Notes: generated from the letters alone by a model not told the origin. 64,000 bases of DNA from Octopus sinensis (GCF_006345805.1 NC_043026.1:310001-374000), one strand, 5' to 3'. Numbered from the stretch's first letter, positions 7,004 to 60,345 are shown. Made by a program: numbers and translations.

Positions 7004-8394
7004 GTTTGTTCTGTAACACAAGAATAGAAACTGGAGAGAGATCAAAGTGAAACGTCGGTCACGAAATCAGAAGAGTACCACCCTTTAACACGCCACTGAT
7101 GAAACTAGAGCGACCAACCGAAAGACTGTTTCTGCGAAACGCCGGATATTGTTTTACTTTCCTTTGTATAATTAGTATCATTGTTCTGATCTATTTGATT
7201 TGCTGAAAGCTTTCCCCCACATCCTCTTTCTTTACTACCCACAAGGGATTAAACACAGAAGGGACAAACAAGGACAGACAAATGGATTAAGTCGATTATA
7301 TCGACCCCAGTGCGTAACTTGTACTTAATTTATCGACCCTGAAAGAATGAAAGGCAAAGTGGGACTCGGCGGAATTTGAACTCAGAACGTAGCAGCAGAC
7401 GAAATACCTCTTTCTTTACTAACCACAAGGGGCTAAACATAGAGGGGACAAACAAGGACAGACAAACGGATTAAGTCGACTATATCGACCCCAGTGCGTA
7501 ATTGATACTTATTTAATCGAACCCGAAAGGATTAAAGGTAAAGTCGACCTCGGCGGAATTTGAACTCAGACGAAATACTGCTAAGGGTTTCGCACGTCGT
7601 GCTAACGTTTCTGCCAGCTTTCCCCAACATCAGAGAGATAAAACCTCATATATCTACGCAAAGGCACAACGCATGCACGTACGCATGGGTGCGCATGCAC
7701 GTATATACGCGCACGCTCGCACACACACACACACACACACATCTCTTTTACATATAGTCTGGACAGTCATGAACTGGAACAACAACAACAGCTCTCAGAA
7801 AGAGAGAAACAGAATCACAACTCAAAAGACAGATATTGGATACAATATTTAGATGGATTCTTTATTAACAGGTAAAACGTGACTTATGTGCATCACCAGT
7901 GGTGGTCAGCTGGATTGGGTGAATGGTAACAACAACAACAGCTGGAATGAGAGAAAGAGAATCACAACTCAAAAGACCGATGTTGGATGGAATATTTGTG
8001 TGGATTCTTTATTAAAAGGTAAAACGTGACTTATGTGGATCACCAGTGGTGGTCAACTGGATTGGATGGACGTTAACAACATCAATAGTATCAATGGATA
8101 TCATATGCTGGGTTAGTTCTGCTGCCTCAGGCGGATGAATATGACCATTGAGTCTGCTAATGCATAACCTGCAAGTAACAAATAACGACATCAACAACAA
8201 AAAGACATTCAAATATATCATGGGAAGGCTTTATACGTGGTCATTCGAATTACTAGAAATAGCAGTCGATTCTCGGTCAGAATGCTTTTATTCATAAATC
8301 AGCTCAATCAAGCTTATTGGTTCCTGAACAATAAGTACAAAATTAACATTTAGTACTACTACTCACAGTAAGACACACACCCACACACACACAC

Positions 8395-8433
<39 letters not shown>

Positions 8434-8866
8434 GAAGATTCAATATCACTTATTGTTGTTCCATATGACTTTCGATTTTGTATCAGAATAACGAATTGAA
8501 GGGTAGTGATCTGTCTCTTCGTACTGACAGTCAAATGGTCCCTCATTGATGGTCAACCAGCCTCTGTCCCCTTCACAAAAACCATGTAATGTTATATAGA
8601 AGCGACGTACATGTCTAAGGAGAAAAAGAAAAAAAAAACTTGTTTGGGTTTCAGAATATGAAAATCTAAACATGTATTAAATAGACTAGTATGTCCGCTA
8701 CACGCAATTGAATTAGTCAGTGTTTAATTAAAAATAGCCATCTGTGTATCATACTAAATGTGTATACACACAAAGATGTGGGTTTAAACACTCACACACA
8801 TAAAAACACACATATGCACTGAAACACGCACACACACACACACACACACGTACGCGCACACACACA

Positions 8867-8904
<38 letters not shown>

Positions 8905-9154
8905 CTCACACAAACACGCAGAAATGCGCAAATGTCAATACACCAACAAAGGCGAAATTACACACGAGGCAAACACTTTGGTACAAAAATAAATAAATCC
9001 ACAAACGGCCACAAACATACGAGCGATAACATTTTCCTGTATTAAACATCTTATCAAAGCGCTAAATAAATATAAAATGAATTCTAGTCAAAATAAATAA
9101 TATAACGGAACATAAAAATATCTAAACCCAACGCATACAAATAAATATAATTAT

Positions 9155-9351
9155 GGTAAAGTGGCTGTGTGGTAAGTAGCTTGCTTACCAACAACATCCT
9201 TCCGGGTTCAGTCCTACTGCGTAGCACCTTGGGCAAGTGTTTTTACTCTAACCTCGGGCCGACAAAAGCCTTGTGAGTGGATTTGGTAGACGGAAACTGA
9301 AAGAAGCCCGTCGTATATATGTATATATATATATATGTGTGTGCGTGTGTG

Positions 9352-9425
<74 letters not shown>

Positions 9426-9582
9426 TCGCCCCAACATCTCTTGACAACCGTAACTTAGCGGTTCGGCAAAAGAGACCGATAGAATAAGTATTAGGCTTGC
9501 AAAAAATAAGTCCTGTGTCGATTTGCTCGACTAAAGGCAGTGCTCCAGCATGGCCACACTCAAATGACTGAAACAAGTAAAT
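9155..9582 (+). mobile_element. tRNA-derived SINE family 1 with internal (TA)/(TG)n (also 19700-20128 +, 30312-30738 +, ~3600-4069 -, 48097-48503 -, ~58892-59332 -)
   Basis: A-box-like GTGGCTGTGTGGTAAG and B-box-like GGGTTCAGTCC; resembles octopus SINEs from memory. Confidence 0.75.
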
Positions 9583-11029
9583 GAGCACATTAAGGTGAAA
9601 ATATATTTTCGTGTTTCCCACTTTGAAACATGCTTCTTGATGTGAAATCCAGGAAACTGAGCTGTTTGTCACGGGAAAACATTTAATTTAAAAGTGTGTT
9701 GTTAAAAATACGGAAATATATTAGCAATAGAGAAATAACCTTTTTCAGCGGCGGTGGAATTGCTAGGAGGAATTACAACCGTGTTTCGTAGTCTGCTACC
9801 ACAACACCTCCTATGTAGGATCCATTAGCTCAAGTCATCATCAGGAGGAACCACGTTCGGTTTCGGCCCCTACTCCTCTACCGTTTTGACGTGGCGGGAT
9901 CCCCCCGCCCTTTCGGGAATGTCTTCAGCTCTGGTGTTGTGTGCATGTCTTCTTTCTTCTGTTCCCGGGCCTCTTCGATGTATCGTCAGCGAGTGTCAGC
10001 CGGTGACTGATAGACTTGTCAAAACTCTCCCTTTAAATACCTACCGCGAGGCTCCAGCAGGGAGCAGCAGCAAGTTGTCACGTGACACTGTCTCACCTTA
10101 ACTGAGTACTGAAGGCGCGTAGTTTTAGCCCGCGTATTCTCTAAACGACCGTCACCTGTCAGTCAGCGAAGCTGATTCAGTGTCAGCTTGTCTCACCAAG
10201 TGATATTATATCCGGCCGGCATGTTATGACTTTCAAGACATTTTCGGTCTTCCCGCTGTACGTATTCCTGTTTCTTTCAAAACATCAATATGAAGTAGTC
10301 ATTGACATCCGCATGCGCAGACCTATTTAGCCTCGGTATAGAAAAACAGTGATTAACAAATCACTAGCGTTGCTGTTAGTCAAGAGGCAGAATATATTTC
10401 ATTATTACGGGCGGAAGCGGTATTAGTTCAAAATTGCATTCTGTATGTTATAATAAATGAAGATATAATGTTGAAAGCCTAGAGATGCGTTGTTCATCCC
10501 CAGAAAGTGTCGCGTCGAAATGTATAGTGTTAAAATTTATCTATAGCGTACGTAAAGTGACATTTTTTAACAATATAGGTCTCTACATAACAAAATAAAA
10601 GAAGATGAAATATATATTTGCATACCTAAATCCCTCAATTGAGAATTGAACTCCAGTGGCTGAAGCTAGGTCGTTCCACGGTGAATTTTTCAACTTTTCG
10701 TGAGAGAACCAGCTTTGAAGGTTTGTATTTCGTCCATCAAATATTATAGTTACCACATCTGTTTGGTTTTTATAAATCACCAGTTTCACCTGTAAAATAA
10801 ATGAGCATGTAGCACACACATACAACCACATACGCTTACAACCACACACGCACGCACATACACACATAATAAAAAGAAATGGCTCAAGTTAAATAGATCG
10901 AGGTAATTTAATATATATTTCCTTCACTGTTAGCTTAATGTCCACTCTCATTTTTACTTCGTAATTCTCCTGACCGAAATTAATCTGTTTAACATGCGAA
11001 ATTAATGACTTTGATTGGTCACTCGCTCC

Positions 11030-11530
11030 ATACGTATCTTTTTTTTCCTGCCTTTAACCCTCCATCGCTGAGTATAGGCCACTTAGAGTTGAATTCCATG
11101 TCGCATAATTTTTCACTTCTGTACTTATACTCTTCTATGAATGTCCCCCTTTCTCTAGTTCCTTCTGTTGATCTACGCCATGAGTTCTTAGGCCTACGAT
11201 ACTTTCTATATCCAGCCGGATTACACTGTAAAGCACTTTTCGCTATATTTGGTGTGTCTTTTATAATTGTGCTACGAATCCACTTCTACTTTTTCTTAAA
11301 TATTTGCTCCCTAATCGAAACTTGATTTGTTCTTTGCCATAGCTCCATATTGCTTATGTGTTCGGGTCATCTAATTTTAAGTATACTACGCAAGCATCTG
11401 TTGATGAATGATTGTATTTGCTGATTTGACGTATCTTCCTATTTCAAAATGAATCATATAATATAATTAATTACACTTTACTTAAAAGTCTCATATGCTA
11501 CCATGATACTATCTGGTATATATCACTTAA
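11030..11530 (-). mobile_element. RTE-type fragment, copy A (also ~21590-22080 -, ~32200-32690 -, ~56935-57425 +; truncated at ~301-515 and ~63762-63975 +)
   Basis: Near-identical to 46130-46630; duplicated with the repeat unit. Confidence 0.65.
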
Positions 11531-12756
11531 CCTTCAATACAGTATGACCTCAAGAACTGGAAGTGTTATGTAAACTTGTTATTTCATAGTATTACTTAAG
11601 ATCTCGTGTTATTGCTTGCCGAGTTGTATGACACAATGTATTAATAATTTTCTGCAATACCCAAATAATACGTTCGTTTTTAGCTCCATTACATGCAGAT
11701 ACACCCCATCCCACAAGCACATACACACACAAACAAACACACACACAAACTAATGAATATGCATACATATATACATGGTGGCTGCCCCCTTGTTATCGAG
11801 TATGGCCATTGCACGAAGCTTAATCAATGTTGTTATCTTGCAATGCCTGTGCAAGAAGATTTTTTATTAAGTGAGGAAGGGCTCTGCACTGAGTCAATCC
11901 CACTCACTAAGCAACAGCAGCCATAATCCGAAAAGAAGAACAAGTCCACATCATCGGTAACCACTGAGCCGCAGGTTTTATATCGGAGTTATCCCACTTA
12001 CCTGAGCTACCTTCTCCTAGAAGGATGCTTTAACAAAGACTAGAAGTCCTTCATTCCCAATGGTTTAACCGCGTGATCGGGTACTCAGTCCGATTATTTC
12101 TATGTCCCCGCGCATGATACATCCTTAATACATTTATTCGATGGCCATTGACTCTCAAGAGTTCCTCCGCCCTTTCACGGGTTTTGTTATTCATCCCGCA
12201 TGGTGTCCAATAAACACCCTCCTCACAAAGCAAGCTTGGTGGGGTTGCCGGTTTACTCGCCGACGGCCCGACTATGCAACAGGCTGTACTCGGTTACATG
12301 TTACCAGTAGCACTCGAAAGTGACCTGACATACATACATACATAAATACAAACGTACACACATGCATATATTCATACAAACGTAACACATGCATACACAC
12401 ACATATATGTATATATACATGCATACACATATATGGATACACACATACATACATGTATGCATATATACATACGTATGTGTATACACATGCACACTAACGC
12501 ACACACATGCGCACAAACAAACAGAAGGAACGCAGCCCTGATAACGGACAGGCTCAATGACTTTTGAAAGACGTAACGGAAATTTTAGAAAAAATAAGTA
12601 AATGAGTGGAAATCGAACCGGTGCGTGTGTTAACTAATAAGGCACTAAAACGAAAATGACTCTCCCCACATACAATAAACTGTGCTTTAACACACGAATT
12701 CACATAAAGAATAACCAAATACAAAAACCATATCTTTCTATCTATCTATCTACTTG

Positions 12757-12792
<36 letters not shown>

Positions 12793-12796
12793 CTTG

Positions 12797-12851
<55 letters not shown>

Positions 12852-12980
12852 GTCTGTCTATTTATCTATCTATCTATCTATCTATCTTTTTCAATCTCTC
12901 CAAGAAGGGAGAGTCTTTCGTTCAAGATAAATATTCTTATTACTGCGGTTTGCCGCAGATAAGATTCTTTACAACGGCGA

Positions 12981-13380
12981 GCTAGCAGAAACGTTAGCAC
13001 GCCGGGAGAAATGCTTAGCGGTATTTCGTCTGCGTTACGTTGTGAGTTCAAATTCCGCCGAGGTCCACTTTGCCTTTCATCCTTTCGGGGTCGATAAATT
13101 AAGTACCAATTACGCACTGGGGTCGATGTAATCGACTTAATACCTATGTCGGTCCTTGTTTGTCCTCTCGGTGTTTAGCCCCTTGTGGGTAATAAAGAAA
13201 TACGTATTTCGTCTGTGGTTACGTTCCGAGTTCAAATTTCGCCGAGGTCGACTTTGCCTTTCATCCTTTCGGGGTCAGTAAATTAAGTACCAGTTATGCA
13301 CCGGGGTCAACGTAATCGACTTAATCCGTTTGTCTGTCCTTGTTTGTCCCCTCTGTGTTTAGCCCCTTGTGGGTAGTAAA
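12981..13380 (+). mobile_element. SINE family 2, head-to-tail dimer in intron 2 (also 23474-23875, 34084-34482 +; 44733-45133, 55535-55935 -)
   Basis: GCTGGCAGAAACGTTAGC A-box, GAGTTCAAATTCC B-box, central GTCGACTTTGCCTTTCATCCTTTCGGGGTCGATAAA, tail AGCCCCTTGTGGGTAATAAAGAAAT. Confidence 0.78.
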
Positions 13381-13819
13381 TGGGAAAAAAAAGGAAAAAA
13401 AAATTCTTTACAACACTACTTCGTCAACCTAGTAAATAAATTCTAGAAATCAAATATATTACAAACATAATTGAATTGATCTAAAAGCCGGTTAATCATT
13501 ATAACGATTATGAAGACAATAATGTGTTGCGCACTCGCGCGTTTGTGCATGCATAAACATACATACCTCATCAATTGGAAGATTGTTCCAGAAATTTAGG
13601 AAAGGATGTCGGAAGAAGTTAGGACAAAAGGTACCATTGCATTTGTCCACATTCCAGGTTGAAGGAAGTCCTATATTCAGGAATGAATTATAGACTTTCG
13701 AACCAGCTCCCTTTGATATGGCATATACTTCGATCCATTTGCTATCTGAAATAATAATTATAACAACAATAGTAATAATAATGATGATAGAGGTATCAGC
13801 ACCTAGCTATCAACACGGT

Positions 13820-14008
13820 TAAAAAAGATTGGTGCACGTGTGAAGGTGGAACACCTTCAAAGAATAAGCATTGCTTGGAACTGTAAGAATTCTTTGCAGA
13901 GTTCTTGAAGCATGGCCAGTAAATAAGCGTCACCTTAGTCTGCTAAGCTGTGGACAGCTGACACGTTCCATCATAACCAGCAAAATAAGTTGTGAGATTT
14001 CATATAAT
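13820..14008 (+). mobile_element. Old R4/Dong-type LINE 3' remnant ending in the (AAC/AAT)n tract (also ~24325-24500 +, ~34920-35105 +, ~44110-44295 -, ~54910-55095 -)
   Basis: Encodes ...[13 protein letters not shown], similar to the C-terminus of the young element (VLMGTAHILRKIL), followed by a short UTR and an AAT tail. Confidence 0.6.
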
Positions 14009-14009
14009 A

Positions 14010-14014
14010 AGAAT

Positions 14015-14058
<44 letters not shown>

Positions 14059-14140
14059 AAACAACAACAAAAACAACAACAATAACAATAACAATAATAA
14101 TAATAATAATAATAATAAGTATAATAATGATAATAATAAT
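14010..14140. repeat. (AAC)n(AAT)n compound microsatellite in intron 1 (all copies)
   Basis: Read directly from the sequence. Confidence 0.95.
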
Positions 14141-15429
14141 AAATACCCTGATGCTGTACCTGACAGTAGCTCTCATGGCTTCTGATCTTAAGTGATTGGA
14201 AGTGTTATCTTACGAATAGCAAAGGACCACGTTTCGGACTTCTCCCACTACTGGGACGAAGACCGCTTCGCTCAACAAACAAACAAACAAACAGCAACAA
14301 CAATATTAATATTGATTTCAAATTTTGGCACAAGGCCAGCAAATTATTGGAGAGAAAAGTAAATCGATTTCATTGACCTCACTCTTCAACTGGTACCGCA
14401 AAAAGCAAAATAAAGGAACAAAACAAAACAGTAATAATAAAGAAGATTCACTTACTTCTATAGAAGGAAATCTCGTTCTTGTTATTCGTACTGACGACTG
14501 TCATTATATTTTTCGGTGAGTAATTCTTACAAGCATGGCTGACTTTGTTGTAAGTGAAAAATTGCGATTGGCTCCTCTGAGCGAGCGCGGTGCAGTCGAG
14601 TAGGTTTCGTGTTGAGGAGAATTGTTCTGTTGGAGGTGTCCCAATATAACCATAGGAATAACCAGTTCCCAAACGTTTGTAGTAGCCATCAAGTTCCTGA
14701 TCTGAGGTAACAACCAGAATTGTTGTAAGGGTTAACAGCAGCACTGCCATTGCAGCTGGACGAGTAAAAGCTGACTGGAACATTCTTGACTCTATGATTG
14801 CTAAACTTAGACAGAAGCGGGAAAGAAATGGCATGAAAAAGAGAAGGAATGAGGTGGGGTGAAATATGAAGAGATTCAGCAATGAGACAAAATGAATTTT
14901 AATAAAGAGAGAACGGGGAAGAGAAAGACAAGGAGAGAAGAAAAAAGTTAGAGAGTAACAGAGAGAAATCCTGAAAAAGAAGAGAGAGATACAATGAGAA
15001 GATGGAAAGTGTTTGTGTGTGAGAGGAAGGTTGTTCGGAAGAGAAAACGCAAAAGGAATAACATATAATTTAGAATAAAAAATTTAAAATATATTACGGT
15101 TATTGGTAAAGACGCAGGTCCTGGAGAAGATTTTAAGTTGTATTCGGGGAAGATTTTAAGTTGTATTACGGGGCCCTGGTTTGATATATCCAGGGTTTTC
15201 AAGAATTGGTAGTAATTCTAGGGCCTTCATTCATGACCATTAATAACTGGGACTATAGAATATAGGTTCAGGCACAGCTGTAAGATTAAGGAGCTCTCTT
15301 GGTAATCACATGCTTCCCGGTTCAATCCCACTGAGCGGCTACTTGTGCAAGTGTCTTCTAGTATTGGCCCGGCCAACCAATGCCTAGAGAGGGAATCTGG
15401 TAGCCGGAAAGTATGTGGAAGGCCTTTGC

Positions 15430-15501
<72 letters not shown>

Positions 15502-16715
15502 GTCTGTCTGTCTGCTTGCCTGCCTGTCTGTCTGTCTGTCTGTATGTATGTATATATATACATACATACATACATACATACATACATAGACACACACATA
15601 TATATATATATATATATAGCTAGTTAGCTAGCTGTGAGAGAGAACGAAACGAGGGAAACAGTGTGTGTGTGAGAGAGAGAGAGAGCGTTTACTCGATACA
15701 ACAATTGAAAGAGCGCAAGATTCGCGTTTGCATGCGCAATCACCCTTACCTCAACTGTTGTCACACACCCACACGCTCTAATATTAACTCCAACATATCC
15801 TAGCCATAACACATACCCAAACACATAAAATGCAATGTGATAGAAAGCACACTTACTTTCAGTGAGGTAGGGCGGAGAGCGTATACTTCAGGTGGTTCTG
15901 TAAGGTCTTCTTGTAAGGAAGGTTCGTGAATGTCACGCCTTTATCACTGTTTCCCTTACTGTCTTCTCCCGTCAATATTACCCTCTATTACCCACAGCTG
16001 TGTCTTCAGATGTCTGAACACTTCGTAACCGTCAGTACTGGCCACTGCTTTCTCTCCTAATTTCTCTTATCAGTATTACTTACAGACTTAGACCTGTCCA
16101 TAAATAATCAAACCGTATAGACTGTCCATAAATGAGCAAAAGACAGAACCATCAACTCAGTTCAAGACTGTTTACTAATATGACTGTTTCTCCACAGAAG
16201 TGAAAATAAACCAGATTTTCCAATATGTACCCTTTGATTGCTATGAAGAATAAAAGGGCCTTCAATAGAGACATGCGTTTCACTAAGCTCGCAGAAAATA
16301 CGGCGGTGTGGTTACTGACGTCGTTCCAATGTTAGCAGTAAGGCTGTTGCGCTGTTTGTGATAGTGACGTTGTAGTTTTAATACCTGGTGATAGCGTGAT
16401 GTGATGTTGGTGTTTCTGTGAGTGGAGATATAAAAGCAGAACAATTGAGGTCGCTATACCGAAGACTTTCATTATAGGAAATCATTGAAATCAATCACCG
16501 TGGATGATGGAACAAGCACCTAGTCCTGACCTGTGTACACTCTTAATTTCAACCATTGATAGTTGATGTGTTAATAGATAATTTTCTTCATTTCATGACA
16601 AATAAACACGCCAACAGTTACAGACATCGAAGCATAACACGAACAGTTCACACCAGTTTCACTCTGCATGTTTTTACATGTATCTTAGGAATTAACGGTG
16701 CTTTGTTATAAGGTA

Positions 16716-16789
<74 letters not shown>

Positions 16790-16820
16790 TGCTTTATCAA
16801 TCAATCTATCTATCTATCTC

Positions 16821-16882
<62 letters not shown>

Positions 16883-16946
16883 CATTGCTTTATCAATCTA
16901 TCTACTATCTATCTATCTCCCTACCTTTCTATCTATCTATCAATCA

Positions 16947-17015
<69 letters not shown>

Positions 17016-17020
17016 CTATC
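16716..17020. repeat. (TATC)n microsatellite (also ~4663, 6018, 12735, 27200, 38992, 51455, 56030, 62378)
   Basis: Read directly from the sequence; length varies between copies. Confidence 0.95.
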
Positions 17021-17022
17021 TA

Positions 17023-17763
17023 TGTGTGGGTGGCTGATTATGGGCGTGCATTGTCTTACAACAATAGACATCGGCGTTAGTTACGAATTGCTGGTTTCCC
17101 CTTGTTAACCAACATTTCACTGTAGACCCCTTTTAAGGGACAATGTTGCAATAAAGAACCTTTTGCATCCCCCAAAACGCTTAGCATTACATTTTTCTGC
17201 CGAAGGTTGAATCTTGAATTTCTTTTCCACTGGTGATTCGTTTCGTTTCCGCTTCATACTAAACCTTTTCGATTCTGGCTCAAAGTTATGGGCCCCGATT
17301 TCATCAATCGTGTCTACTCTCACTCAAAACAACTTTAACTTCATCGCTGAAGCGTTCGAGTTAGAATTGACAAAAATCCACACGATTGCGCTTATACACA
17401 TCGAAAAGCTCTCTTGGCACCTTTCTCGTATTAACTCCGCAGAACCGAAGTTTGTCGTGGATACAGAATCATAATAATTTGCAGAGAATAAGCCATCTCA
17501 TCAATGGGAAATCGTAAATTGTTGAATCTCCACGTCACCGGTGACGGTTAATGTGTGTCCTTATCACTCCTCGTATTTCACGCTTGTCCGGCCATTTAAA
17601 ACATCTCGCTCTTCTCGTAAATACTTCTACGCAGTAGAGCGCTGTTCCTTAATTGTATTGAAAGCCTGCAAAGAATTGCAGCCGCTGACACACATTAAGA
17701 TTAGAGAGGCAATTTCACTGATCCATATTTTACCTTGATGCACACTTCCAGTAGAGCTGCCAC
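17023..17763 (-). mobile_element. Mariner fragment (unit copy)
   Basis: ORF track MRVDTIDEIGAHNFEPESKRFSM...KKFKIQPSAEK. Confidence 0.8.
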
Positions 17764-18736
17764 GTTTGTTCTGTAACACAAGAATGGAAACTGGAGACAG
17801 ATCAACGTGAAACGTCGGTCATGAAATCAGAAGAGTACCACCCTTTAACACGCCACTGATGAAACTAGAGCGACTAACCGAAAGACTATTTCGGCGAAAC
17901 GCCGGATATTGTTTCACTTTCGTTTGTATAATTAGTATCATTGTTCTGATCTATTTGATTTGCTGAAAGCTTTCCCCCACATCCTCTTTCTCTACTACCC
18001 ACAAGGGGTTAAACACAGAAGAGACAAACAAGGACAGACAAACGGATTAAGTCGATTATATCGACCCCAGTGCGTAACTTGTACTTAATTTGTCGACCCT
18101 GAAAGGATAAAAGGCAAAGTGGGCCTCGGCGGAATTTGAACTCAGAACGTAGCAGCAGACGAAATACCTATTTCTCAACTACACACAAGGGGCTAAACAC
18201 AGAGGGGACAAACAAGGACAGACAAATGGATTGAGTCGATTATATCGACCCCAGTGCATAACTGGTACTTATTTAATCGACCCAGAAAGGATGAAAGGTA
18301 AAGTCGACCTCGGCGGAATTTGAACTCAGAAAGTAGCGGCAGACGAAATACTGCTAAGCATTTCGCCCGGCGTGCTAACGTTTCTGCCAGCTTTCCCCAA
18401 CATCACAGAGATAAAACCTCATTTATCTACACACACGCACAACGCATGCACGTACGCATGTGCGCGCATGCACGTGTATACGCGCACGCTCGCACACACA
18501 CATACACACACATCTCTTTTACATATTGTCTGGACAGTCGTGAACTGGAACAACAACAACAGCTCTCAGAAAGAGAGAAAGAGAATCACAACTCAAAAGA
18601 CCGATGTTGGATACAATATTTATATGGATTCTTTATTAACAGGTAAAACGTGACTTATGTGGATCACCAGTGGTGGTCAACTGGATTGTATGGACGTTAA
18701 CAACATCAATAGTATCAATGGGTATCATGTGCTGGG

Positions 18737-18792
18737 TTAGTTCTGCTGCCTCAGGCGGATGAATATGGCCATGGAGTCTGCTAATGCATAAC
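18737..18792 (-). CDS. Copy B exon 5
   Basis: 56 nt ending in TAA. Confidence 0.83.
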
Positions 18793-21700: not shown

Positions 21701-23280
21701 AGTTCCTTCTGTTGATCTACGCCATGAGTTCTTAGGCCTACCATACTTTCTATATCCAGCCGGATTACACTGTAAAGCACTTTTCGCTATATTTGGTGTG
21801 TCTTTTATAATTGTGCTACGAATCCACTTCTACTTTTTCTTAAATATTTGCTCCCTAATCGAAACTTGATTTGTTCTTTGCCATAGCTCCATATTGCTTA
21901 TGTGTTCGGGTCATCTAATTTTAAGTATACTACGCAAGCATCTGTTGATGAATGATTGTATTTGCTGATTTGACGTATCTTCCTATTTCAAAATGAATCA
22001 TATAATATAATTAATTACACTTCACTCATATGCTACCATGATACTATCTGGTATATATCACTTAACCTTCAATACAGTATGACCTCACGAACTGGAAGTG
22101 TTACGTAAACTTGTTATTTCATAGTATTACTTAAGATCTCGTGTTATTGCTTGCCGAGTTGTATGACACAATGTATTAATAATTTTCTGCAATACCCAAA
22201 TAATACATTCGCTTTTATCTCCTTTACATGGGGATACACCCCATCCCACAAGCACATACACAGACAAACAAACACACACACAAACTAATGAATATGCATA
22301 CATATATACATGGTGGCTGCCCCCTTGTTATCGAGTATGGCCATTGCACGAAGCTTAATCAATGTTGTTATCGTGCAATGCCTGTGCAAGAAGATTTTTT
22401 ATTAAGTGAGGAAGGGCTCTGCACTGAGTCAACCCCACTCACTAAGCAACAGCAGCCATAATCCGAAAAGAAGAACAAGTCAACATCATCGGTAACCACT
22501 GAGCAGCAGTTTTACATCGGAGTTATCCCAGTTACCTGAGCTACCTTCTCCTAGAAGGATGCTTTAACTAAGGCTAGAAGTCCTTCACTCCCAATGGTTT
22601 AACCGCGTGATCGGGTATTCAGTCCGATTATTTCTATGTCCCCGCGCATGATACATCCTTAATACATTTATTCAATGGCCATTGACTCTCAAGAGTTCCT
22701 CCGCCCTTTGACGGGTTTTGTTTTTCATCCCGCAGTGTGTCGAATAAACACCCTCCTCACCAAGCAAGCTTGGTGGGGTTGCCGGTTTACTCGCCGACGG
22801 CCCGACAATGCAACAGGTTGTACTCGGTTACATGTTACCAGTAGCACTCGAAAGTGACCTGACATACATACATACATACATACATAAATACAAACGTACA
22901 CACATGCATATATTCATACAAACGTACACACATGCATACACACACATATATGTATATATATATGCATACACATATATGCATACACACATACATACATGTA
23001 TGCATATATACATACGTATGTGTATACACATGCACACTAACGCACGCACATGCGCACAAACAAGCAGAAGGAACGCAGCCCTGATAACGGACAGGCTCAA
23101 TGACTTTTGAAAGACGTAACGAAAATTTTAGAAAAAATAAGTAAATGAGTGGAAATCGAACCGGTGCGTGTGTTAACTAATAAGGCACTAAAAAGAGAAT
23201 GACTCTCCCCACATACAATAAACTGTGCTTTAACACACGAATTCACATAAAGAATAACCAAATACAAAAACCATATCTAC

Positions 23281-23330
<50 letters not shown>

Positions 23331-24554: not shown

Positions 24555-24616
<62 letters not shown>

Positions 24617-25897: not shown

Positions 25898-25981
<84 letters not shown>

Positions 25982-41568: not shown

Positions 41569-41863
41569 ATGGCAGTGCTGCTGTTAACCCTTACACCAAT
41601 TCTGGTTGCTACCTCAGATCAGGAACTTGATGGCTACTACAAACGTTTGGGAACTGGTTATTCCTATGGTTATATTGGGACACCTCCAACAGAACAATTC
41701 TCCTCAACACGAAACCTACTCGACTGCACCGCGCTCGCTCAGAGGAGCCAATCGCAATTTTTCACTTACAACAAAGTCAGCCATGCTTGTAAGAATTACT
41801 CACCGAAAAATATAATGACAGTCGTCAGCACGAATAACAAGAACGAGATTTCCTTCTATAGAA
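41569..41863 (+). CDS. Copy D exon 1 (signal peptide + PAN/apple-like segment)
   Basis: GCAATGG start context; ends AGA A|gtaagt; DC...FTYN....C..Y resembles a PAN core that retains two Cys. Confidence 0.85.
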
Positions 41864-42197
41864 GTAAGTGAATCTTCTTTATTATTACTGTTTGTTTTGT
41901 TCCTTTATTTTGCTTTTTGCGGTAGCAGTTGAAGAGTGAGGTCAATGAAATCGACTTACTTTTCTCTCCAATAATTTGCTGGCCTTGTGCCAAAATTTGA
42001 AATCAATATTAATATTGTTGTTGTGTTTTGTTTGTTTATTTGTTGAGCGAAGCGGTCTTCGTCTCAGTAGTGGGAGAAGTCCGAAACGTGGTCCTTTGCT
42101 ATTCGTAAGATAACACTTCCAATCACTTAAGATCAGAAGCCATGAGAGCCACTGTCAGGTACTGCATCAGGGTATTTATTATTATTATCATTTTTAA

Positions 42198-42243
<46 letters not shown>

Positions 42244-44003: not shown

Positions 44004-44044
<41 letters not shown>

Positions 44045-44068
44045 ATTATAATTATTATTATTGTTGTT

Positions 44069-44101
<33 letters not shown>

Positions 44102-47100: not shown

Positions 47101-49468
47101 TATATTGTTAAAAAATGTCACTTTACGTACGCTATAGATAAATTTTAACACTATACATTTTGACGCGACACTTTCTGGTGATGAACAACGCATCTCCAGG
47201 CTTTCAACATTATATCTTCATTTATTATAATATACAGAATGCAAATTTGAACTAATACTGCTTCCGTCTGTAATAATGAAATATATTCTGCCTCTTGACT
47301 AACAGCAACGCTAGTGATTTGTTAATCACTGTTTTTCTATACCGAGGCTAAATAGGTCTGCGCATGCGGATGTCAATGACTACTTCATATTGAAGTTTTG
47401 AAAGAAACAGGAATACGTACAGCGGGAAGACCGAAAATGTCTTGAAAGTCATAACATGCCGGCCGGATATAATATCACTAGGTGAGACGAGCTGACACTG
47501 AATCAGCTTGGCTGACTGACAGGTGACGGTCGTTTAGAGAATGCGCGGGCTAAAACTACGCGCTTTCACTACTCAGTTAAGGTGAGACAGGGTCACGTGA
47601 CAACTTGCTGCGGCTGCCTGCTGGAGTCTCGTGACAGGTATTTAAAGAGAGAATTTTGACAAGTCTGTCAGTCACCGGCTGACACGCGCTGACGATACAT
47701 CGAAGAGGCCCGGGAACAGAAGAAAGAAGACATGCACACAACATCAGAGCTGAAGACATCCCCGAGAGGGCGGGAGCATCCCGCCACGTCAAAACGGTAG
47801 AGGAGTAGGGGCCGAAACCGGACGTGGTTCCTCCTGATGATGTCTTGAGCTAATGGATCCTACATAGGAGGTGTTGTGGTATCAGACCACGAAACACGGT
47901 TGTAATTCCTCCTAGCAATTCCACCGCCGCTGGAAAAGGTTATTTCTCTATTGCTAATATATTTCCGTATTTTTAACAACACACTTTTAAATTAAATGTT
48001 TTCCCGTGACAAACAGCTCAGTTTCATAGATTTCACATCAAGAAGCATGTTTCAAAGTGGGAAACACGAAAATATATTTTCACCTTAATGTGCTCATTTA
48101 TTTGTTTCAGTCATTTGACTGTGGCCATGCTGGAGCACTGCCTTTAGTCGAGCAAATCGACCACAGGACTTATTTATTGTAAGCGTAGTACTTATTCGAT
48201 CGGTGTCTTTTGCCGAACCGCTAAGTTACGGTTGTGAAGGGATATTGGGGCGACAAGCACACACACACACACACACACTAACACACACATACACACACAC
48301 ACACATATACACACACGCACACACATATATATTTACATATATATGACGGGCTTCTTTCAGTTTCCGTCTACCAGATCCACTTACAAGGCTTTGGTCGGCC
48401 CGAGGCTATAGTAGAAGACACTTGCCCAAGGTGCTACGCAGTAGGACTGAACCCGGAAGCATGTGGTTGGTAAGCAAGCTACTTACCACACAGCCACTTT
48501 ACCATAATTATATTTACTTGTAAGTGTTGGGTTTAGATATTTTTATGTTCCGTTATAATATTTATTTTGACTAGAATTCATTTTATATTTATTTAGCGCT
48601 TTGATAAGATGTTTAATACAGGAAAATGTTATCGCTCGTATGTTTGTGGCCGTTTGTGGATTTATTTATTTTTGTACCAAAGTGTATGCCTCGTGTGTAA
48701 TTTCGCCTTTTTTGGTGTATTGACATTTTCGCATTTCCGCGTGTTTGTGTGAGCATGTGTGTGTGTGTATGTGTGTGTGTGTGTGTGTATGTGTGTGCGT
48801 ACGTGTGTGTGTGCGTGTTTCAGTGCATATGTGTGTTTTTATGTGTGTGAGTGTTTAAACGCACATCTTTGTGTGTATACACATTTAGTATGGTACACAG
48901 GTGGCTCTTTTTAATTAAGCACTGACTAATTCAATTGCGTGTAGCGGACATACTAGTCTATTTAATACATGTTTAGATTTTCATATTCTGAGACCCAAAC
49001 AAGTTTTTTTTTCTTTTTCTCCTTAGACTTGCACGTCGCTTCCATATAACAATACATGGTTTTTGTGAAAGAGACAGAGGATGGCTGACCATCAATGAGG
49101 GACCATATGTATGTGAGTTCGATAAGTCAGATCACTACCCTACAATTCGTTATTCTGATACAAAATCGAAAGTCATATGGAACAACGGTAAGTGATATTG
49201 TATCTTCTGTGTGTGTTTGCGTGTGTCTTACTGTGAGTAGTAGTACTAAAAATTAATTTTGTACTTATTGTTTAGCGGCCAAAAGTGACCGACCCACAAA
49301 ACGATGCAGAGATTCGGCTGCCATTTCTAGTAATTCGAGTTGCCATCTATAAAGACCTCCCAAGAAATATTTGAAATCCTTTTGTTATTGATGTTGTTAT
49401 TGTTACTTGCAGGTTATGCATTAGCAGACTCCATGGCCATATTCATCCGCCTGAGGCAGCAGAACTAA
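41569..49468 (+). CDS. Gene copy D (intact): 5-exon secreted protein, 284 aa; exons 41569-41863, 44368-44546, 46889-47052, 49027-49187, 49413-49468
   Basis: All introns GT-AG with compatible phases (1,0,2,1); spliced CDS is 855 nt and open. Translation: [284 protein letters not shown]. Hydrophobic N-terminus looks like a signal peptide; AATAAA at 49568 and 49714. Confidence 0.88.
42271..44000 (-). mobile_element. 5'-truncated R4/Dong-type LINE (end of RT + restriction-like endonuclease) in intron 1 of copy D
   Basis: ORFs 43952-43203 and 43165-42485, split by a frameshift near 43220: late RT motifs (FGPDKCAK, YKYLG), degenerate CCHC finger (RVC..ETIDHVVSKC), RHD and RPDI..D motifs. Inserted into an (AAT)n tract; absent from the other copies. 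Confidence 0.88.
44368..44546 (+). CDS. Copy D exon 2
   Basis: ttcag|ATAGC...GATGAG|gtatgt, 179 nt, open. Confidence 0.85.
46130..46630 (+). mobile_element. Degraded RTE-type LINE 3' fragment in intron 2 of copy D
   Basis: Degenerate ORF2 C-terminal motifs across frames: [12 protein letters not shown], ISNxELWQRT, [25 protein letters not shown]. Confidence 0.7.
46889..47052 (+). CDS. Copy D exon 3
   Basis: ttttacag|GTGAAA...TTTAG|gtatgc, 164 nt. Confidence 0.87.
47592..47673 (+). promoter_or_regulatory. Putative Pol II core promoter in intron 3 (GTCACGTGAC E-box, TATTTAAA, TCAGTC Inr)
   Basis: TATTTAAA at 47639 lies 31 nt upstream of the A of TCAGTC (47670); TGCGCATGCG at 47359. Motif geometry only. 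Confidence 0.3.
49027..49187 (+). CDS. Copy D exon 4 (hypervariable exon)
   Basis: ccttag|ACTTGC...AACG|gtaagt, 161 nt. Confidence 0.87.
49413..49468 (+). CDS. Copy D exon 5 (terminal)
   Basis: ttgcag|GTTATG...AACTAA. Confidence 0.83.
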
Positions 49469-54170: not shown

Positions 54171-54801
54171 ATGGCAGTGCTGCTGTTAACCCTTACAACA
54201 ATTCTGGTTGTTACCACAGATCAGGAACTTGATGGCTACTACAAACGTTTGGGACCTGGTTATTCCTATGGTTATATTGGGACACCTCCAACAGAACAAT
54301 TCTTCTCAACACGAAACCTACTCGACTGCACCGCGCTCGCTCAGAGGAGCCAATCGCAATTTTTCACTTACAACAAAGTCAGCCATGCTTGTAAGAATTA
54401 CTCACCGAAAAATATAATGACAGTCGTCAGCACGGATAACAAGAACGAGATTTCCTTCTTTAGAAGTAAGTGAATCTTCTTTATTATTACTGTTTTTCTT
54501 TTGTTTTTTGATTTTGCTTTTTGCGGTACCAGTTGAAGAGTGAGATCAATGAAATCGAGTTACTTATCTCTCCAATAATTTGCTGGCCTTGTGCCAAAAT
54601 TTGAAATCAATATTAATATTCTTGTTGCTGTTTGTTTGTTTGTTTGTTGAGCGAAGCGGTCTTCGTCCCAGTAGTGGGAGAAGTCCGAAACGTGGTCCTT
54701 TGCTATTCGTAAGATAACACTTCCAATCACTTAAGATCAGAAGCCATGAGAGCCACTGTCAGGTACTGCATCAGGGTATTTATTATTATTATCATTTTTA
54801 A

Positions 54802-54856
<55 letters not shown>

Positions 54857-56108
54857 ATTATAATTATTATTATTGTTGTTATTGTTGTTGTTGTTGTTGT
54901 TATTCTTATTATATGAAATCTCACAACTTATTTTGCTGGTTATGATGGAACGTGTCAGCTGTCCACAGCTTAGCAGACTAAGGTGACGCTTATTTACTGG
55001 CCATGCTTCAAGAACTCTGCAAAGAATTCTTACAGTTCCAAGCAATGCTTATTATTTGAAGGTGTTCCACCTTCACACGTGCACCAATCTTTTTTAACCG
55101 TGCTGATAGCTAGGTGCCGATACCTCTATCATCATTATTATTACTATTGTTGTTATAATTATTATTTCAGATAGCAAATGGATCAAAGTATATGCCATAT
55201 CAAAGGGAGCTGGTTCGAAAGTCTATAATTCATTCCTGAATATAGGACTTCCTTCAACCTGGAATGTGGACTAATGCAATGGTACCTTTTGTCCTAACTT
55301 CTTCCGACATCCTTTCCTAAATTTCTGGAACAATCTTCCAATTGATGAGGTATGTATGTTTATGCATGCACAAACGCGCGAGTGCGCAACACATCATTGT
55401 CTTCATAATCGTTATAATGATTAACCGGCTTTTAGATCAATTCAATTATGTTTGGAATATATTTGATTTCTAGAATTTATTTATTAGGTTGACGAAGTAG
55501 TGTTGTAAAGAATATTTTTTTCCTTTTTTTTCCCATTTACTACCCACAAGGGGCTAAACACAGGGGGGACAAACAAGGACAGACAAACGGATTAAGTCGA
55601 TTACGTTGACCCCGGTGCATAACTGGTACTTAATTTACTGACCCCGAAAGGATGAAAGGCAAAGTCGACCTCGGCGAAATTTGAACTCGGAACGTAACCA
55701 CAGACGAAATACGTATTTCTTTATTACCCACAAGGGGCTAAACACCGAGAGGACAAACAAGGAACGACATAGGTATTAAGTCGATTACATCGACCCCAGT
55801 GCGTAACTGGTACTTAATTTATCGACCCCGAAAGGATGAAAGGCAAAGACGACCTCGGCGGAATTTGAACTCACAACGTAACGCAGACGAAATACCGCTA
55901 AGCATTTCTCCCGGCGTGCTAACGTTTCTGCCAGCTCGCCGTTGTAAAGAATCTTATCTGCGGCAAACCGCAGTAATAAGAATATTTATCATGAACGAAA
56001 GACTCTCCCTTGTTGGAGAGATTGAAAAAGATAGATAGATAGATAGATAGACAGATAGATAGATAGATAGATAGACAGATAGATAGATAGATAAATAGAC
56101 AGACAGAC

Positions 56109-56178
<70 letters not shown>

Positions 56179-59100
56179 GTAGATATGGTTTTAGTATTTT
56201 GTTATTCTTTATGTGAATTCGTGTGTTAAAGCACAGTTTATTGTATCTGGGGAGAGTCATTCTCTTTTTAGTGCCTTATTAGTTAACACACGCACCGGTT
56301 CGATTTCCACTCCTTTACTTATTTTTTCTAAAATTTTCGTTACGTCTTTCAAAAGTCATTGAGCCTGTCCGTTATCAGGGCTGCGTTCCTTCTGCTTGTT
56401 TGTGCGCATGTGCGTGCGTTAGTGTGCATGTGTATACATATACGTATGTATATCTGCATACATGTATGTATGTGTGTATGCATATATGTGTATGCATATA
56501 TATATACATATATGTGTGTGTATGCATGTGTGTACGTTTGTATTTATGTATGTATGTATGTATGTATGTATGTATGTATGTATGTCAGGTCACTTTCGAG
56601 TGCTACTGGTAACATGTAACCCATTACAACCTGTTGCATAGTCGGGCCGTCTGCGACTAAACCGGCAACCCCACCAAGCTTGCTTTGTGAGGAGGGTGTT
56701 TATTGGACACCCTGCCGCATGAAAAACAAAACCCGTGAAAGGGCGGAGGAACTCTTGAGAGTCAATGGTCATCCAATAACTGTATTAAGGATGTATCATG
56801 CGTGGGGACATAGAAATAATCGGACTGAATACCCGATCACGCGGTTAAAACATTGGGAGTGAAGGACTTCTAGCCCTTGTTAGGGCATCCTTCTAGGAGA
56901 AGGTAGCTCAGGTAACTGGGATAACTCCGATGTCATACTGTATTGAAGGTTAAGTGATATATACCAGATAGTATCATGGTAGCATATGAGTGAAGTGTAA
57001 TTAATTATATTATATGATTCATTTAGAGATAGCAAGATACGCCAAATCAGCAAATACAATCATTCATCAACAGATGCTTGCGTAGTATACTTAAAATTAT
57101 ATGACCCGAACACATAAGCAATATGGAGCTATGGCAAAGAACAAATCAAGTTTCGATTAGGGAGTAAATATTTAAGAAAAAGTAGAAGTGGATTCGTAGC
57201 ACAATTATAAAAGACACACCAAATATAGCGAAAAGTGCTTTACAGTGTAATCCGGCTGGATATAGAAAGTATGGTAGTCCTAAGAACTCATGGCGTAGAT
57301 CAACAGAAGGAACTAGAGAAAGGGGGACATTCATAGAAGAGTATAAGTACAGAAGTGAAAAATTATGCGACATGGAATTCAACTCTAAGTGGCCTATACT
57401 CCGCGTTGGAGGGTTAAAGGCAGGAAAAAAAAACATACGTATGGAGCGAGTGACCAATCAAAGTCATTAAATACGCATGTTAAACAGATTAATTTCGGTC
57501 AAGAGAATTACGAAGTAAAAATGAGAGTGGACATTAAGCTAACAGTGAAGGAAATACATATTTATTTACCTCGATCTATTTAACTTGATCCATTTCTTTT
57601 TATTATGTGTGTATGTGCGTGCGTGTGTGGTTGTAAGCGTATGTGGTTGTATGTGTGTGCTACATGCTCATTTATTTTACAGGTGAAACTGGTGATTTAT
57701 AAAAACAAAACAGATGTGGTAACTATAATATTTGATGGACGAAATACAAACCTTCAAAGCTGGTTCTCTCACGAAAAGTTGAAAAATTCACCGTGGAACG
57801 ACCTAGCTTCAGCCACTGGAGTTCAATTCTCAATTGAGGGATTTAGGTATGCAAATATATATTTCATCTTCTTTTATTTTGTTATGTAGAGACCTATATT
57901 GTTAAAAAATGTCACTTTACGTACGCTATAGATAAATTTTAACACTATACATTTTGACGCGACACTTTCTGGTGATGAACAACGCATCTCCAGGCTTTCA
58001 ACATTATATCTTCATTTATTATAATATACAGAATGCAAATTTGAACTAATACTGCTTCCGTCTGTAATAATGAAATATATTCTGCCTCTTGACTAACAGC
58101 AACGCTAGTGATTTGTTAATCACTGTTTTTCTATACCGAGGCTAAATAGGTCTGCGCATGCGGATGTCAATGACTACTTCATATTGAAGTTTTGAAAGAA
58201 ACAGGAATACGTACAGCGGGAAGACCGAAAATGTCTTGAAAGTCATAACATGCCGGCCGGATATAATATCACTAGGTGAGACGAGCTGACACTGAATCAG
58301 CTTGGCTGACTGACAGGTGACGGTCGTTTAGAGAATGCGCGGGCTAAAACTACGCGCTTTCACTACTCAGTTAAGGTGAGACAGTGTCATGTGACAACTT
58401 GCTGCGGCTGCCTGCTGGAGTCTCGTGGCAGGTATTTAAAGGGAGAATTTTGACAAGTCTGTCGGTCACCGGCTGACACGCGCTGACGATAAATCGAAGA
58501 GGCCCGGGAACAGAAGAAAGAAGACATGCACACAACACCAGAGCTGAAAACATCCCCGAAAGGGCTAGGGGCATCCCCCCACGTCAAAACGGTAGAGGAG
58601 TAGGGGCCGAAACCGGACGTGGTTCCTCCTGATGATGTCTTGAGCTAATGGATCCTACATAGGAGGTGTTGTGGTATCAGACCAAGAAACACGGTTGTAA
58701 TTCCTCCTAGCAATTCCACCGCCGCTGGAAAAGGTTATTTCTCTATTGCTAATATATTTCCGTATTTTTAACAACACACTTTTAAATTAAATGTTTTCCC
58801 GTGACAAACAGCTCAGTTTCCTGGATTTCACATCAAGAAGCATGTTTCAAAGTGGGAAACACGAAAATATATTTTCACCTTAATGTGCTCATTTACTTGT
58901 TTCAGTCATTTGACTGTGGCCATGCTGGAGCACTGCCTTTAGTCGAGCAAATCGACCCCAGGGCTTATTTTTTGTAAGCGTAGTACTAATTCGATCGGTG
59001 TCTTTTGCCGAACCGCTAGGTTACCGTTGTCAAGGCATGTTGGGGCGACAAACACAGACACACACAGACAGACAGACAGACACACACACACACACACACA

Positions 59101-60345
59101 AATACACACACACAAATATTCTCATACACACACATACATACACACACGCACACACACATATATACATATATACGACGGGCTTTTTTCAGTTTCCCTCTAC
59201 GAAATCCACTCACAAGGCTTTGGTCGGCCCGAGGCTATAGTAGAAGACACTTGCCCAAGGTGCTACACAGTAGGACTGAACCCGGAAGGATGTTGTTGGT
59301 AAGCAAGCTAATTACCACACAGCCACTTTACCATAATTATATATATTTGTATGTGTTGGGTTTAGATATTTTTATGTTCCGTTATATTATTTCTTTTGAC
59401 TAGAATTCATTTTATATTTATTTAGCGCTTTGATAAGGTGTTTAATACAGGAAAATGTTATCACTCGTATATTTGTGGCCGTTTGTGGATTTATTTATTT
59501 TTGTACCAAAGTGTATGCCTCGTCTGTAATTTCGCCTTTGTTGGTGTATTGACATTTGCGCATTTCTGCGTGTTTGTGTGAGCATGTGTGTGTGTATGTG
59601 TGTGTATGTGTGTGTGTGTGCGTACGTGTGTGTGTGTGCGTGTTTCAGTGCATATGTGTGTTTTTATGTGTGTGAGTGTTTAAACGCACATCTTTGTGTG
59701 TATACACATTTAGTATGATACACAGATGGCTATTTTTAATTAAGCACTGACTAATTCAATTGCGTATAGCGGACATACTAGTCTATTTAATACATGTTTA
59801 GATTTTCATATTCTGAAACCCAAACAAGTTTTTTTTTCTTTTTCTCCTTAGACATGTACGTCGCTTCTATATAACATTACATGGTTTTTGTGAAGGGGAC
59901 AGAGGCTGGTTGACCATCAATGAGGGACCACTTCACTGTCAGTTCGAAGAGTCAGATCACTACCCTTCAATTCGTTATTCTGATACAAAATCGAAAGTCA
60001 TATGGAACAACGGTAAGTGATATTGTATATTCTGCGTGTGTGTGTGTGTGTGTGTGTGCGTGTGTGTGTGTGTGTGTGCGTGTGTCTTACTGTGAGTAGT
60101 AGTACTAAAAGTAAATTTTGTACTTATTGTTTAGCTGCCAATCAGGCTTGATTGAGCTGATTTATGAATAAAAGGATTCTGACCGAGAATCGACTGCTAT
60201 TTCTAGTAATTCGAGTGACCACGTATAAAGCCCTCCCACGATATATTTGAATGTCTTTTGTTGTTGATGTTGTTATTTGTTACTTGCAGGTTATGCATTA
60301 GCAGACTCCATGGCCATATTCATCCGCCTGAGGCAGCAGAACTAA
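54171..60345 (+). pseudogene. Gene copy E: exons 54171-54465, 55171-55349, 57683-57846, 59852-60012, 60290-60345; premature stop in exon 2
   Basis: In-frame TAA at 55272-55274, the same lesion as copy C; splice sites otherwise intact. Confidence 0.82.

Follow-up and report, generated by a model that had tools for sequence, protein, structure and literature searches.

The window analysed here, a stretch of 64,000 nucleotides (nt) of the Octopus sinensis genome (GCF_006345805.1 NC_043026.1:310001-374000; all positions follow its numbering), carries five full-span copies of a five-exon gene together with truncated units. We read it as part of a large, rearranged tandem Octopus cluster of genes for secreted two-domain recognition (binding) proteins, which evolves by birth and death; we consider the chances for and against this reading to be about equal. 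The five-unit gene structure lies far beyond chance.

The peptide MAVLL, which opens exon 1, occurs five times in the window, three times on the minus strand and twice on the plus strand. The exons of copy D were traced from position 41569 (+): a sole 179-nt open segment bounded by AG and GT is found between exons 1 and 3, and exons 3, 4 and 5 were located by the same rule. In this model, the acceptors are of the polypyrimidine-AG type, the donors are GTAAGT or GTATG, and the joined coding sequence (CDS) of 855 nt encodes 284 amino acids (aa) and a stop codon, counted from MAVLL. When the D exons were compared with the window by BLAST, all five were found to recur in order in five units, A to E. 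The gene models and their coordinates are as follows.

14750..8113, minus strand: copy A, full span (BLAST of the D exons; translation)
25241..18737, minus strand: copy B, intact five-exon gene (855-nt open reading frame (ORF), introns all GT-AG, 284 aa from MAVLL)
25241-24947, 24240-24062, 21337-21174, 19221-19061 and 18792-18737, minus strand: exons of copy B
25274, minus strand: CDS start of copy B from the upstream ATG, 33 nt further 5′
35856..29361, minus strand: copy C, pseudogene (TAA and 1-nt deletion in exon 2; upstream ATG changed to ATT)
41569..49468, plus strand: copy D, intact five-exon gene (855-nt ORF, GT-AG introns, 284 aa from MAVLL)
41569-41863, 44368-44546, 46889-47052, 49027-49187 and 49413-49468, plus strand: exons of copy D
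41536, plus strand: upstream ATG of copy D
54171..60345, plus strand: copy E, full span, GT-AG introns (TAA nonsense codon in exon 2)

A sequence-only reading of the window had proposed five full-span copies with exon phases 1, 0, 2, 1 and a 284-aa product from MAVLL, and all of this was recovered in the gene models. Two of its statements hold with an exception each: the exon lengths of 295, 179, 164, 161 and 56 nt are general, but exon 2 of copy C has 178 nt; and the introns are GT-AG everywhere except in copy A, where the GT donor of intron 4 is lost. The five spans are likewise real, but they are not five genes, as translation and alignment of the exons with their flanks left only B and D intact. 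Copy A reads AAT in place of GGT at 8454-8452, through substitutions in the final base of exon 4 and in the G of the donor. The nearest GT lies 4 nt downstream, and its use would shift the frame of the conserved last strand at the C-terminus; copy A is probably either a pseudogene or the source of a C-terminally frameshifted product. Copies C and E have the same AAA to TAA nonsense codon in exon 2 (34845-34668 in C, 55171-55349 in E), followed in copy C by the additional 1-nt deletion 15 nt past the TAA, and copy E is also a probable pseudogene. The identical change is seen in C and E despite their opposite strands and different exon-4 types; the common nonsense codon therefore indicates gene conversion or mosaic ancestry of the units.

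A separate observation concerns the 3′ end of copy A (exon 4, 8450-8614; exon 5, 8113-8168). Read one frame off, exon 5 gives LCISRL(H/N)...TTGDPHKSRFTF, the exact tail of two O. vulgaris models named 'Hypothetical predicted protein' (P0018 and P0019). The same tail would result in copy A from use of the GT 4 nt downstream of the lost donor, and the two O. vulgaris models look chimeric or frameshifted.

The splicing pattern agrees with sequences from outside the window. The spliced D protein is 81% identical to the RefSeq model P0001, without a gap across any of the four junctions. In addition, a Logan contig of 1,273 nt (SRR30931884) contains an uninterrupted 292-aa ORF of a homologue, which is 31% identical to D and aligns with it gap-free across the last three junctions; at the level of the family, this ORF has the look that would be expected of a spliced mRNA.

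The start codon had been placed at MAVLL in the sequence-only reading, and this placement has to be revised. The RefSeq models start 11 residues upstream at M[FSY]Q, as do 12 of the 15 aligned paralogues, while paralogues have T, I or R in place of the Met of MAVLL. The alignment of exons with flanks does confirm that the upstream ATG reads ATT in copy C, a pseudogene. Because M[FSY]Q is kept in the paralogues, the MAVLL Met is replaced there, and the ATT occurs only in pseudogene C, the upstream ATG (MFQ...) seems the more likely start, giving 295 aa; residue positions below refer to this length. The choice affects neither the hydrophobic core nor the likely cleavage site, TS|DQE. The predicted layout would begin with a putative cleavable signal peptide cut near TS|DQE, followed by a reduced PAN/apple module at residues ~50-109 with one disulfide (C64-C85), then by an Octopus-specific C145-x4-C150 loop, and finally by a beta-rich C-terminal domain (C-domain) of 145-185 aa. 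Six cysteines (64, 85, 145, 150, 237 and 253) are invariant across 16 paralogues, in pairs as had been proposed, and the sequons NYS, NGT and NKT are present. The picture of a spliced, secreted-type, Cys-paired, N-glycosylatable and tandemly amplified family is thereby supported.

Direct searches with the window proteins against Pfam, NCBIfam and PDB returned only sub-threshold noise (DUF6935, PAN_3, 4zgf, Fimbrial_K88). For the N-terminal module, the Pfam match of copy D to PAN_3 (expectation value E=0.12; 12.6 bits against a cut-off of 21.1) is below the gathering score, and copy B gave no PAN match in the Pfam search. Relatives and structure are more informative. PAN_1 was found in 13 of 52 distant relatives at the position of the module, upstream of the C-domain (best E=6.3e-8), as in P0121, where it covers residues 190-255 ahead of the C-domain; PAN_4 and PAN_3 were found in five and three of the 52 family members, respectively. 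A search of PDB with the family profile gave the MIC4 apple domain as its sole match (E=0.04). The structure was modelled by AlphaFold2 (AF2) for P0001, using an alignment of 98 sequences across phyla. Its mean predicted local distance difference test score (pLDDT) is 86, with ~86-92 in residues 50-90; an earlier model from 15 Octopus sequences was poor (pLDDT 63). The modelled module is a helix packed on a five-stranded antiparallel sheet. Foldseek matched it to the N domain of HGF (3hms) with a template modelling (TM) score of 0.64, a root-mean-square deviation (rmsd) of 3.1 and a probability of 1.0, and the PAN matches with probabilities of 0.97-1.0 comprise this domain, the plasminogen PAN (4dur), AMA1, SML-2 and giant-virus PAN proteins, the last with E=3e-4.

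Because of the predicted fold, the Foldseek matches, the MIC4 profile match and the PAN_1-bearing relatives, the N-terminal module is, in the model, a reduced PAN/apple fold. The resemblance to a reduced PAN/apple core that had been noticed from the sequence is thus upheld by Pfam searches of relatives and by the fold comparison suggested as a check, the latter run on P0001 instead of copy D. The likeness to the PAN/apple clan (PAN_1 PF00024, PAN_3 PF08277 and PAN_4 PF14295; for example, HGF, plasminogen, MIC4, AMA1 and the lectin SML-2) lies in the predicted fold of residues ~50-109, in the extracellular nature of the module and in the UniProt label 'Apple domain-containing protein' on some paralogues. 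The Octopus module differs in having one invariant Cys pair, C64-C85, against a PAN core of two or three disulfides, and the window proteins are below every Pfam PAN threshold. The characterised PAN proteins also lack the C-terminal domain of the Octopus proteins.

This C-domain has a far wider distribution. When 1.84 billion representatives (50%-identity clusters) were searched with a profile built from 15 paralogues, 1,069 clusters matched at E≤1e-3; 630 of them remained at E≤1e-10 and 63 at E≤1e-30. Full-length matches, with both PAN module and C-domain, include Argonauta hians, Aplysia californica, Mercenaria and Dreissena, and most of the others are limited to profile positions ~110/150-293; the usual match starts near position 150 and stops near 292, a length of about 145 residues. 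Named members further include the bivalves Mya, Mytilus, Solemya and Potamilus, the gastropods Pomacea and Lymnaea, and, outside the molluscs, Branchiostoma, the crinoid Anneissia, the sea star Acanthaster, the brachiopod Lingula, the coral Oculina and Myxococcota. All these relatives are named 'uncharacterized' or after their other domains. The C-terminal pattern that the sequence-only reading had ascribed to uncharacterised mollusc proteins was thus verified by the profile search and widened to other phyla and Myxococcota. The proposal that the family is lineage-specific does not survive: the combination of PAN and C-domain also exists in Argonauta, Aplysia and bivalves, and the C-domain in corals, echinoderms, amphioxus and Myxococcota, so that the local amplification alone is octopus-specific.

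In alignments of 52 and 98 sequences, the core residues W162, V170, F186, W196, R227, C237, D240, W243, C253, P262, Y266 and A282 (P0001 numbering) are invariant or at least 90% conserved, and all of them are present in copies B and D. In the model, the C-domain consists mainly of beta strands, about nine of them, with two short helices besides (pLDDT 93-98). Foldseek gave no PDB match for it at E<1e-3 and, the PAN part aside, none in BFVD; no sequence-profile match was obtained in Pfam, NCBIfam or PDB, and no InterPro name was found. One amphioxus protein gave a weak summed match to DUF7922 only. The apextrin C-terminal domain ApeC (PF16977), which is distributed among amphioxus, echinoderms, molluscs and bacteria, was considered as a candidate and rejected: no match to it is listed in the window proteins or in seven multidomain relatives, and it is not among the 25 most frequently matched Pfam families for the 52 members.

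In other phyla, the partners of the C-domain are PAN, EGF, ZP-N/ZP-C, FA58C, VWD, uromodulin D8C, TSP1, TIG, FG-GAP and the bacterial GGGWT module. Since these are extracellular adhesion or recognition modules, the C-domain is placed firmly outside the cell, and it is an ancient, widespread and unnamed extracellular family. A bolder proposal goes further, namely that the C-domain represents a so far undescribed extracellular ligand-binding domain of ancient origin and distinct structure, and that behind a PAN module in Octopus it forms a new class of recognition receptor, which follows the logic of the FREPs with a hypervariable loop giving each copy its specificity; we put this forward tentatively, as a possibility that is more doubtful than not.

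Some of these partnerships bear on another role. In the amphioxus protein P0050, the C-domain occurs four times together with EGF, ZP-N and ZP-C, and in P0101 it occurs with VWD, EGF and uromodulin D8C; such architectures are typical of matrix or coat proteins, in which PAN modules are also common. The Octopus proteins might then have a structural role in a matrix or coat outside the cell, such as that of the egg capsule, cuticle, sucker lining or mucus, with copy number serving dosage, and tandem amplification with high exon identity would suit selection for dosage. We hold this to be unlikely. The Octopus proteins are small and have neither a polymerisation module (ZP, VWD) nor repeats, their variation is not absent but concentrated in a single loop, three pseudogenes among five copies speak against strong dosage selection here, and the stored supplements of a skin-mucus proteome yielded no peptide of the family. 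The sequence-only reading had also considered venom or saliva, besides an immune lectin-like role and a gamete or egg coat; for none of these was evidence found in expression or in the literature. The support for a secreted effector of the salivary (venom) gland, or of another offensive or defensive secretion, is generic, namely small size, secretion, paired Cys, amplification in tandem and a loop that evolves fast; against it, no similarity to described toxin families was found in Pfam or PDB, no literature or proteome match was found, and the C-domain is common to non-venomous bivalves, corals, echinoderms, amphioxus and bacteria. We consider such an effector very improbable.

The bacterial relatives raise the question of whether the C-domain is a highly diverged fibrinogen-related domain (FReD), that is, a lectin domain like those of ficolins, FREPs and intelectins, with acetylated-sugar binding through a P-subdomain-like site at C237-C253. 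In four proteins of Myxococcota or metagenomes (P0086, P0102, P0111 and P0199), the C-domain always stands behind a YCDM...GGGWT fibrinogen-like module. These C-domains are clear homologues of that of Octopus (domain E of 1e-13 to 1e-21; P0199 against the P0102 unit, 3e-31). The GGGWT module matches positions 2-60 of Pfam Fibrinogen_C (E=1e-8), the NCBIfam model GGGWT_bact (E=9e-18) and the PDB chains of fibrinogen, angiopoietin and intelectin (E=3e-7 to 1e-3) as well as MFAP4. Two further points favour a FReD: Foldseek matches to ANGPTL3, ANGPTL6, ficolins, fibrinogen fragment D, MFAP4 and FGL1 recur with two independent models, and the first strand of the C-domain, W-x-LVFR..G.G..VY..W, aligns with GGWTVFQRR.DGS.DF..W of FReDs.

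However, the Fibrinogen_C match in the bacterial proteins sits upstream of the C-domain, and GGGWT is a separate 46-residue unit that NCBIfam models alone. The Foldseek matches, made with an uncropped query, are not significant (best E=0.018-0.03, TM 0.37-0.40, rmsd ~11). Fibrinogen_C matches none of the 52 animal and bacterial C-domains, nor the Octopus proteins; the family profile retrieves no FReD chain in PDB; hhalign of 67 metazoan C-domains against real FReDs gave a probability of 0.1% with E=0.5 over 22 columns, those of the GGWTVFQRR.DGS.DF..W stretch alone; and the YCDM/GGGWT module (the A-subdomain) is absent from the window copies and the Octopus paralogues. FReD membership is therefore not established, and what links the two may amount merely to a common N-terminal edge together with a domain fusion in bacteria. 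A diverged FReD is, in our estimation, rather unlikely, and a FReD-type lectin would in any case be a special case of the logic of secreted recognition. The FReD lectins (PF00147: ficolins, mollusc FREPs, tachylectin-5 and intelectins) are alike in being secreted, recognition-type invertebrate proteins of diversifying multigene families, and unlike in that the Octopus proteins are without an A-subdomain and without an alignable Ca-binding or acetyl-binding motif. The bacterial GGGWT proteins (NCBIfam NF040941, 'fibrinogen-like YCDxxxxGGGW domain-containing protein') differ in architecture: they are giant surface proteins of many domains, TIG and FG-GAP repeats among them, and in Octopus the place of GGGWT is taken by PAN.

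Returning to the window copies and their reading as secreted recognition proteins, we compared the exons with the surrounding sequence. The aligned non-coding divergence between copies is 3-6%; exons 1-3 and 5 differ by 0-3.6% and exon 4 by 7.5-11%. Three types of exon 4 can be distinguished, one in A and E, one in B and C, and one in D and the truncated unit T1 described below. The ratios of non-synonymous to synonymous changes in exon 4 are 14:0 (A-B), 12:0 (B-E) and 4:0 (A-E), and ~13:3.5 for D against the others. Across 16 paralogues, the column entropy of exon 4 is 1.67 bits, more than in any other exon (0.8-1.2); it peaks in two stretches, residues 248-260 around Cys253 and residues 212-224. 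The most variable part in copy D is located as follows, and its equivalents are found in exon 4 of the other copies.

49100..49141, plus strand: hypervariable patch in exon 4 of copy D, codons 249-262, GPYVCEFDKSDHYP, forming the loop around Cys253, which pairs with Cys237

B and D, the intact pair, differ at 10 of the 42 positions of the patch and at 16 of 225 in intron 4 (p=6e-4). It was also found that the exon-4 peptide of copy E is that of P0002 and that exon-4 variants recur in otherwise more distant paralogues. Diversifying selection and gene conversion among paralogues would both fit these data, and we take selection on exon 4 as suggestive.

The family is well represented in databases. 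A search of 5.8 billion proteins yielded 49 clusters, all from O. sinensis, O. vulgaris and O. bimaculoides, under the names 'uncharacterized protein LOC...', 'Hypothetical predicted protein' or 'Apple domain-containing protein'. Contrary to what had been thought, the array is accordingly not hidden, in that about 49 clusters of Octopus paralogues are already modelled in RefSeq and UniProt; the locus is an ordinary birth-and-death tandem array, already gene-modelled publicly. The annotated paralogues (O. sinensis LOC118768579, LOC118768578 and LOC118768581 on CM016888.1; O. bimaculoides LOC106872447; O. vulgaris models on OX597841.1) share the five-exon coding structure and the protein family, with 45-99% identity to D, and are clustered on one chromosome-scale record per species, but none is identical to a window copy. 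P0003 (O. sinensis LOC118768581) is 99% identical to D over 74% of D. Among the O. vulgaris models, some are chimeras or have exon 5 translated in a different frame. At the DNA level, the loci of P0003 (CM016888.1) and P0004 (OX597841.1) are 92-97% identical to the window, which seems to come from the same kind of cluster as these loci but from other stretches of it.

The cluster itself is rearranged in the assembled sequence. Self-comparison and the junction sequences gave a unit length of ~10.5 kb, except for unit D, which has 12.6 kb from a 1.8-kb insertion in intron 1. The sequence-only reading had noticed one broken copy; this is present and is more exactly a 5′-truncated unit, T1, split by an inverted block, and a second truncated unit begins at 63756. 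The order is the T1 5′ part, the inverted A-B-C block (from 4123/4128), the T1 3′ part, D, E and the second truncated unit, with these components besides the copies.

303..4123, plus strand: 5′ part of T1, beginning in the intron-2 equivalent and ending at the left junction with the inverted block
772-931, plus strand: orphan T1 copy of exon 3 (BLAST of the D exons)
~1569-3170, plus strand: retroelement insertion inside the T1 5′ part
4128..36544, minus strand: inverted block of the three whole units A, B and C, 32.4 kb, inserted into intron 3 of T1
36539..37102, plus strand: 3′ part of T1, with an orphan exon 4 (36624-36784) and exon 5 (37047-37102)
63756..64000, plus strand: start of the second 5′-truncated unit, with the same junction as at 283/303

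Exon 4 of T1 is of the D type and 98% identical to that of D. The ends of the inverted block map within ~8 bp of one point of the unit, which precedes the MAVLL start codon by ~630 bp and the MFQ ATG by ~600 bp, and ~385 bp of T1 intron 3 are missing at the insertion site. A junction motif, GTGTT(T)GGGTGTAAA, lies near both ends of the block, at 4095-4110 and 36512-36527. Its equivalents in D, at 48525-48540 and 53555-53570, are situated one in intron 3 and the other, inverted, in the upstream region; microhomology of this kind at the junctions could have mediated the rearrangement by template switching.

Several insertions and repeats were also observed. The insertion in intron 1, found only in copy D (42240-44007, 1.8 kb), has minus-strand ORFs at 42485-43165 and 43203-43952 (226 and 249 aa), the first with a weak zf-RVT match (E=3.7e-4), and is probably a fragment of a retrotransposon without long terminal repeats (non-LTR). 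The T1 insertion (1569-3170), probably the remnant of a retroelement, contains a gag-like ORF at 2202-2744 (+) that encodes a CCHC zinc knuckle (zf-CCHC, E=1e-5) and precedes a second ORF rich in lysine and glutamate. Each unit also has two sets of a 184-bp element, arranged as tandem dimers or trimers; one set lies in intron 2 and the other, oppositely oriented, behind the gene. The element holds a GTTCAAATTCCGCCGAGG motif resembling the B-box of transfer RNA (tRNA) genes and may be a short interspersed nuclear element (SINE); ARAGORN called no tRNA in these SINE-like repeats. Finally, a sequence of 144-147 bp is tandemly duplicated in every copy, starting ~30 nt behind the stop codon in the presumed 3′ untranslated region.

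13021-13380, 17983-18351, 23516-23875, 28463-28831 and 34125-34484: examples of the 184-bp element
37632-38000, 44733-45092, 49968-50476, 55536-55895 and 60878-61212: further examples of the 184-bp element
49496-49782, 60373-60689, 37150-37431, 29032-29312 and 7769-8085: tandem duplication behind the stop codon

With such a structure, the window might be a mostly decaying, non-functional block, or in part an assembly artefact, in which B and D are open only as young copies. The disabling lesions in three of the five copies, the two truncated units, the complex structure with its inverted block and circularly permuted unit ends, the retroelement and SINE-like insertions, and the match of only 92-97% to the O. 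sinensis and O. vulgaris reference loci compared would all fit this explanation. On the other hand, exons 1-3 and 5 are more conserved than the non-coding sequence, B and D keep all the invariant residues of the cross-phylum family, and intact paralogues of 284-296 aa exist elsewhere in the three Octopus species. We regard decay or artefact as an improbable explanation of the whole.

For the reading as a cluster of secreted recognition proteins, some of the results are nevertheless unfavourable. With three of five copies disabled, this part of the cluster may be decaying. Intron 4 has diverged by 7-15%, like exon 4, so that a regionally diverged block is seen, and the patch exceeds the local rate of intron 4 significantly in one of six pairs, B-D; the claim of positive selection is weakened because intron 4 is equally diverged and only B-D is significant, and gene conversion among paralogues could explain exon 4 without positive selection. 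The structure is that of an AF2 model of paralogue P0001 (81% identical) and not of a window protein. No paper on the family was found when searched by LOC, XP and UniProt identifiers and by topic, and the stored supplements of the skin-mucus proteome, which is from O. vulgaris, held no family peptide.

If the reading is correct, the products of the family would be ~30-kDa, secreted, N-glycosylated proteins of two domains, acting as extracellular binding or recognition molecules of a lectin-like or protein-binding kind. The PAN module and the C-domain would each provide a binding surface, and the variable loop stapled by C237-C253 would largely set the ligand specificity of each copy. The cluster would evolve by unequal crossing-over, inversion and template switching, gene conversion, and birth and death, which would leave few intact, diverged copies among pseudogenes.

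The C-domain comprises ~1,000 unnamed 50%-identity clusters from corals to amphioxus, and in bacteria, for which no Pfam model, solved structure or literature was found; its definition would annotate many 'uncharacterized' proteins. It also raises the question of a link to fibrinogen-like modules and of a possible transfer between animals and bacteria. The innate recognition repertoire of cephalopods is poorly known, and if the recognition role is true, the Octopus cluster would represent another expanded, fast-diversifying family of secreted binding proteins in these animals.

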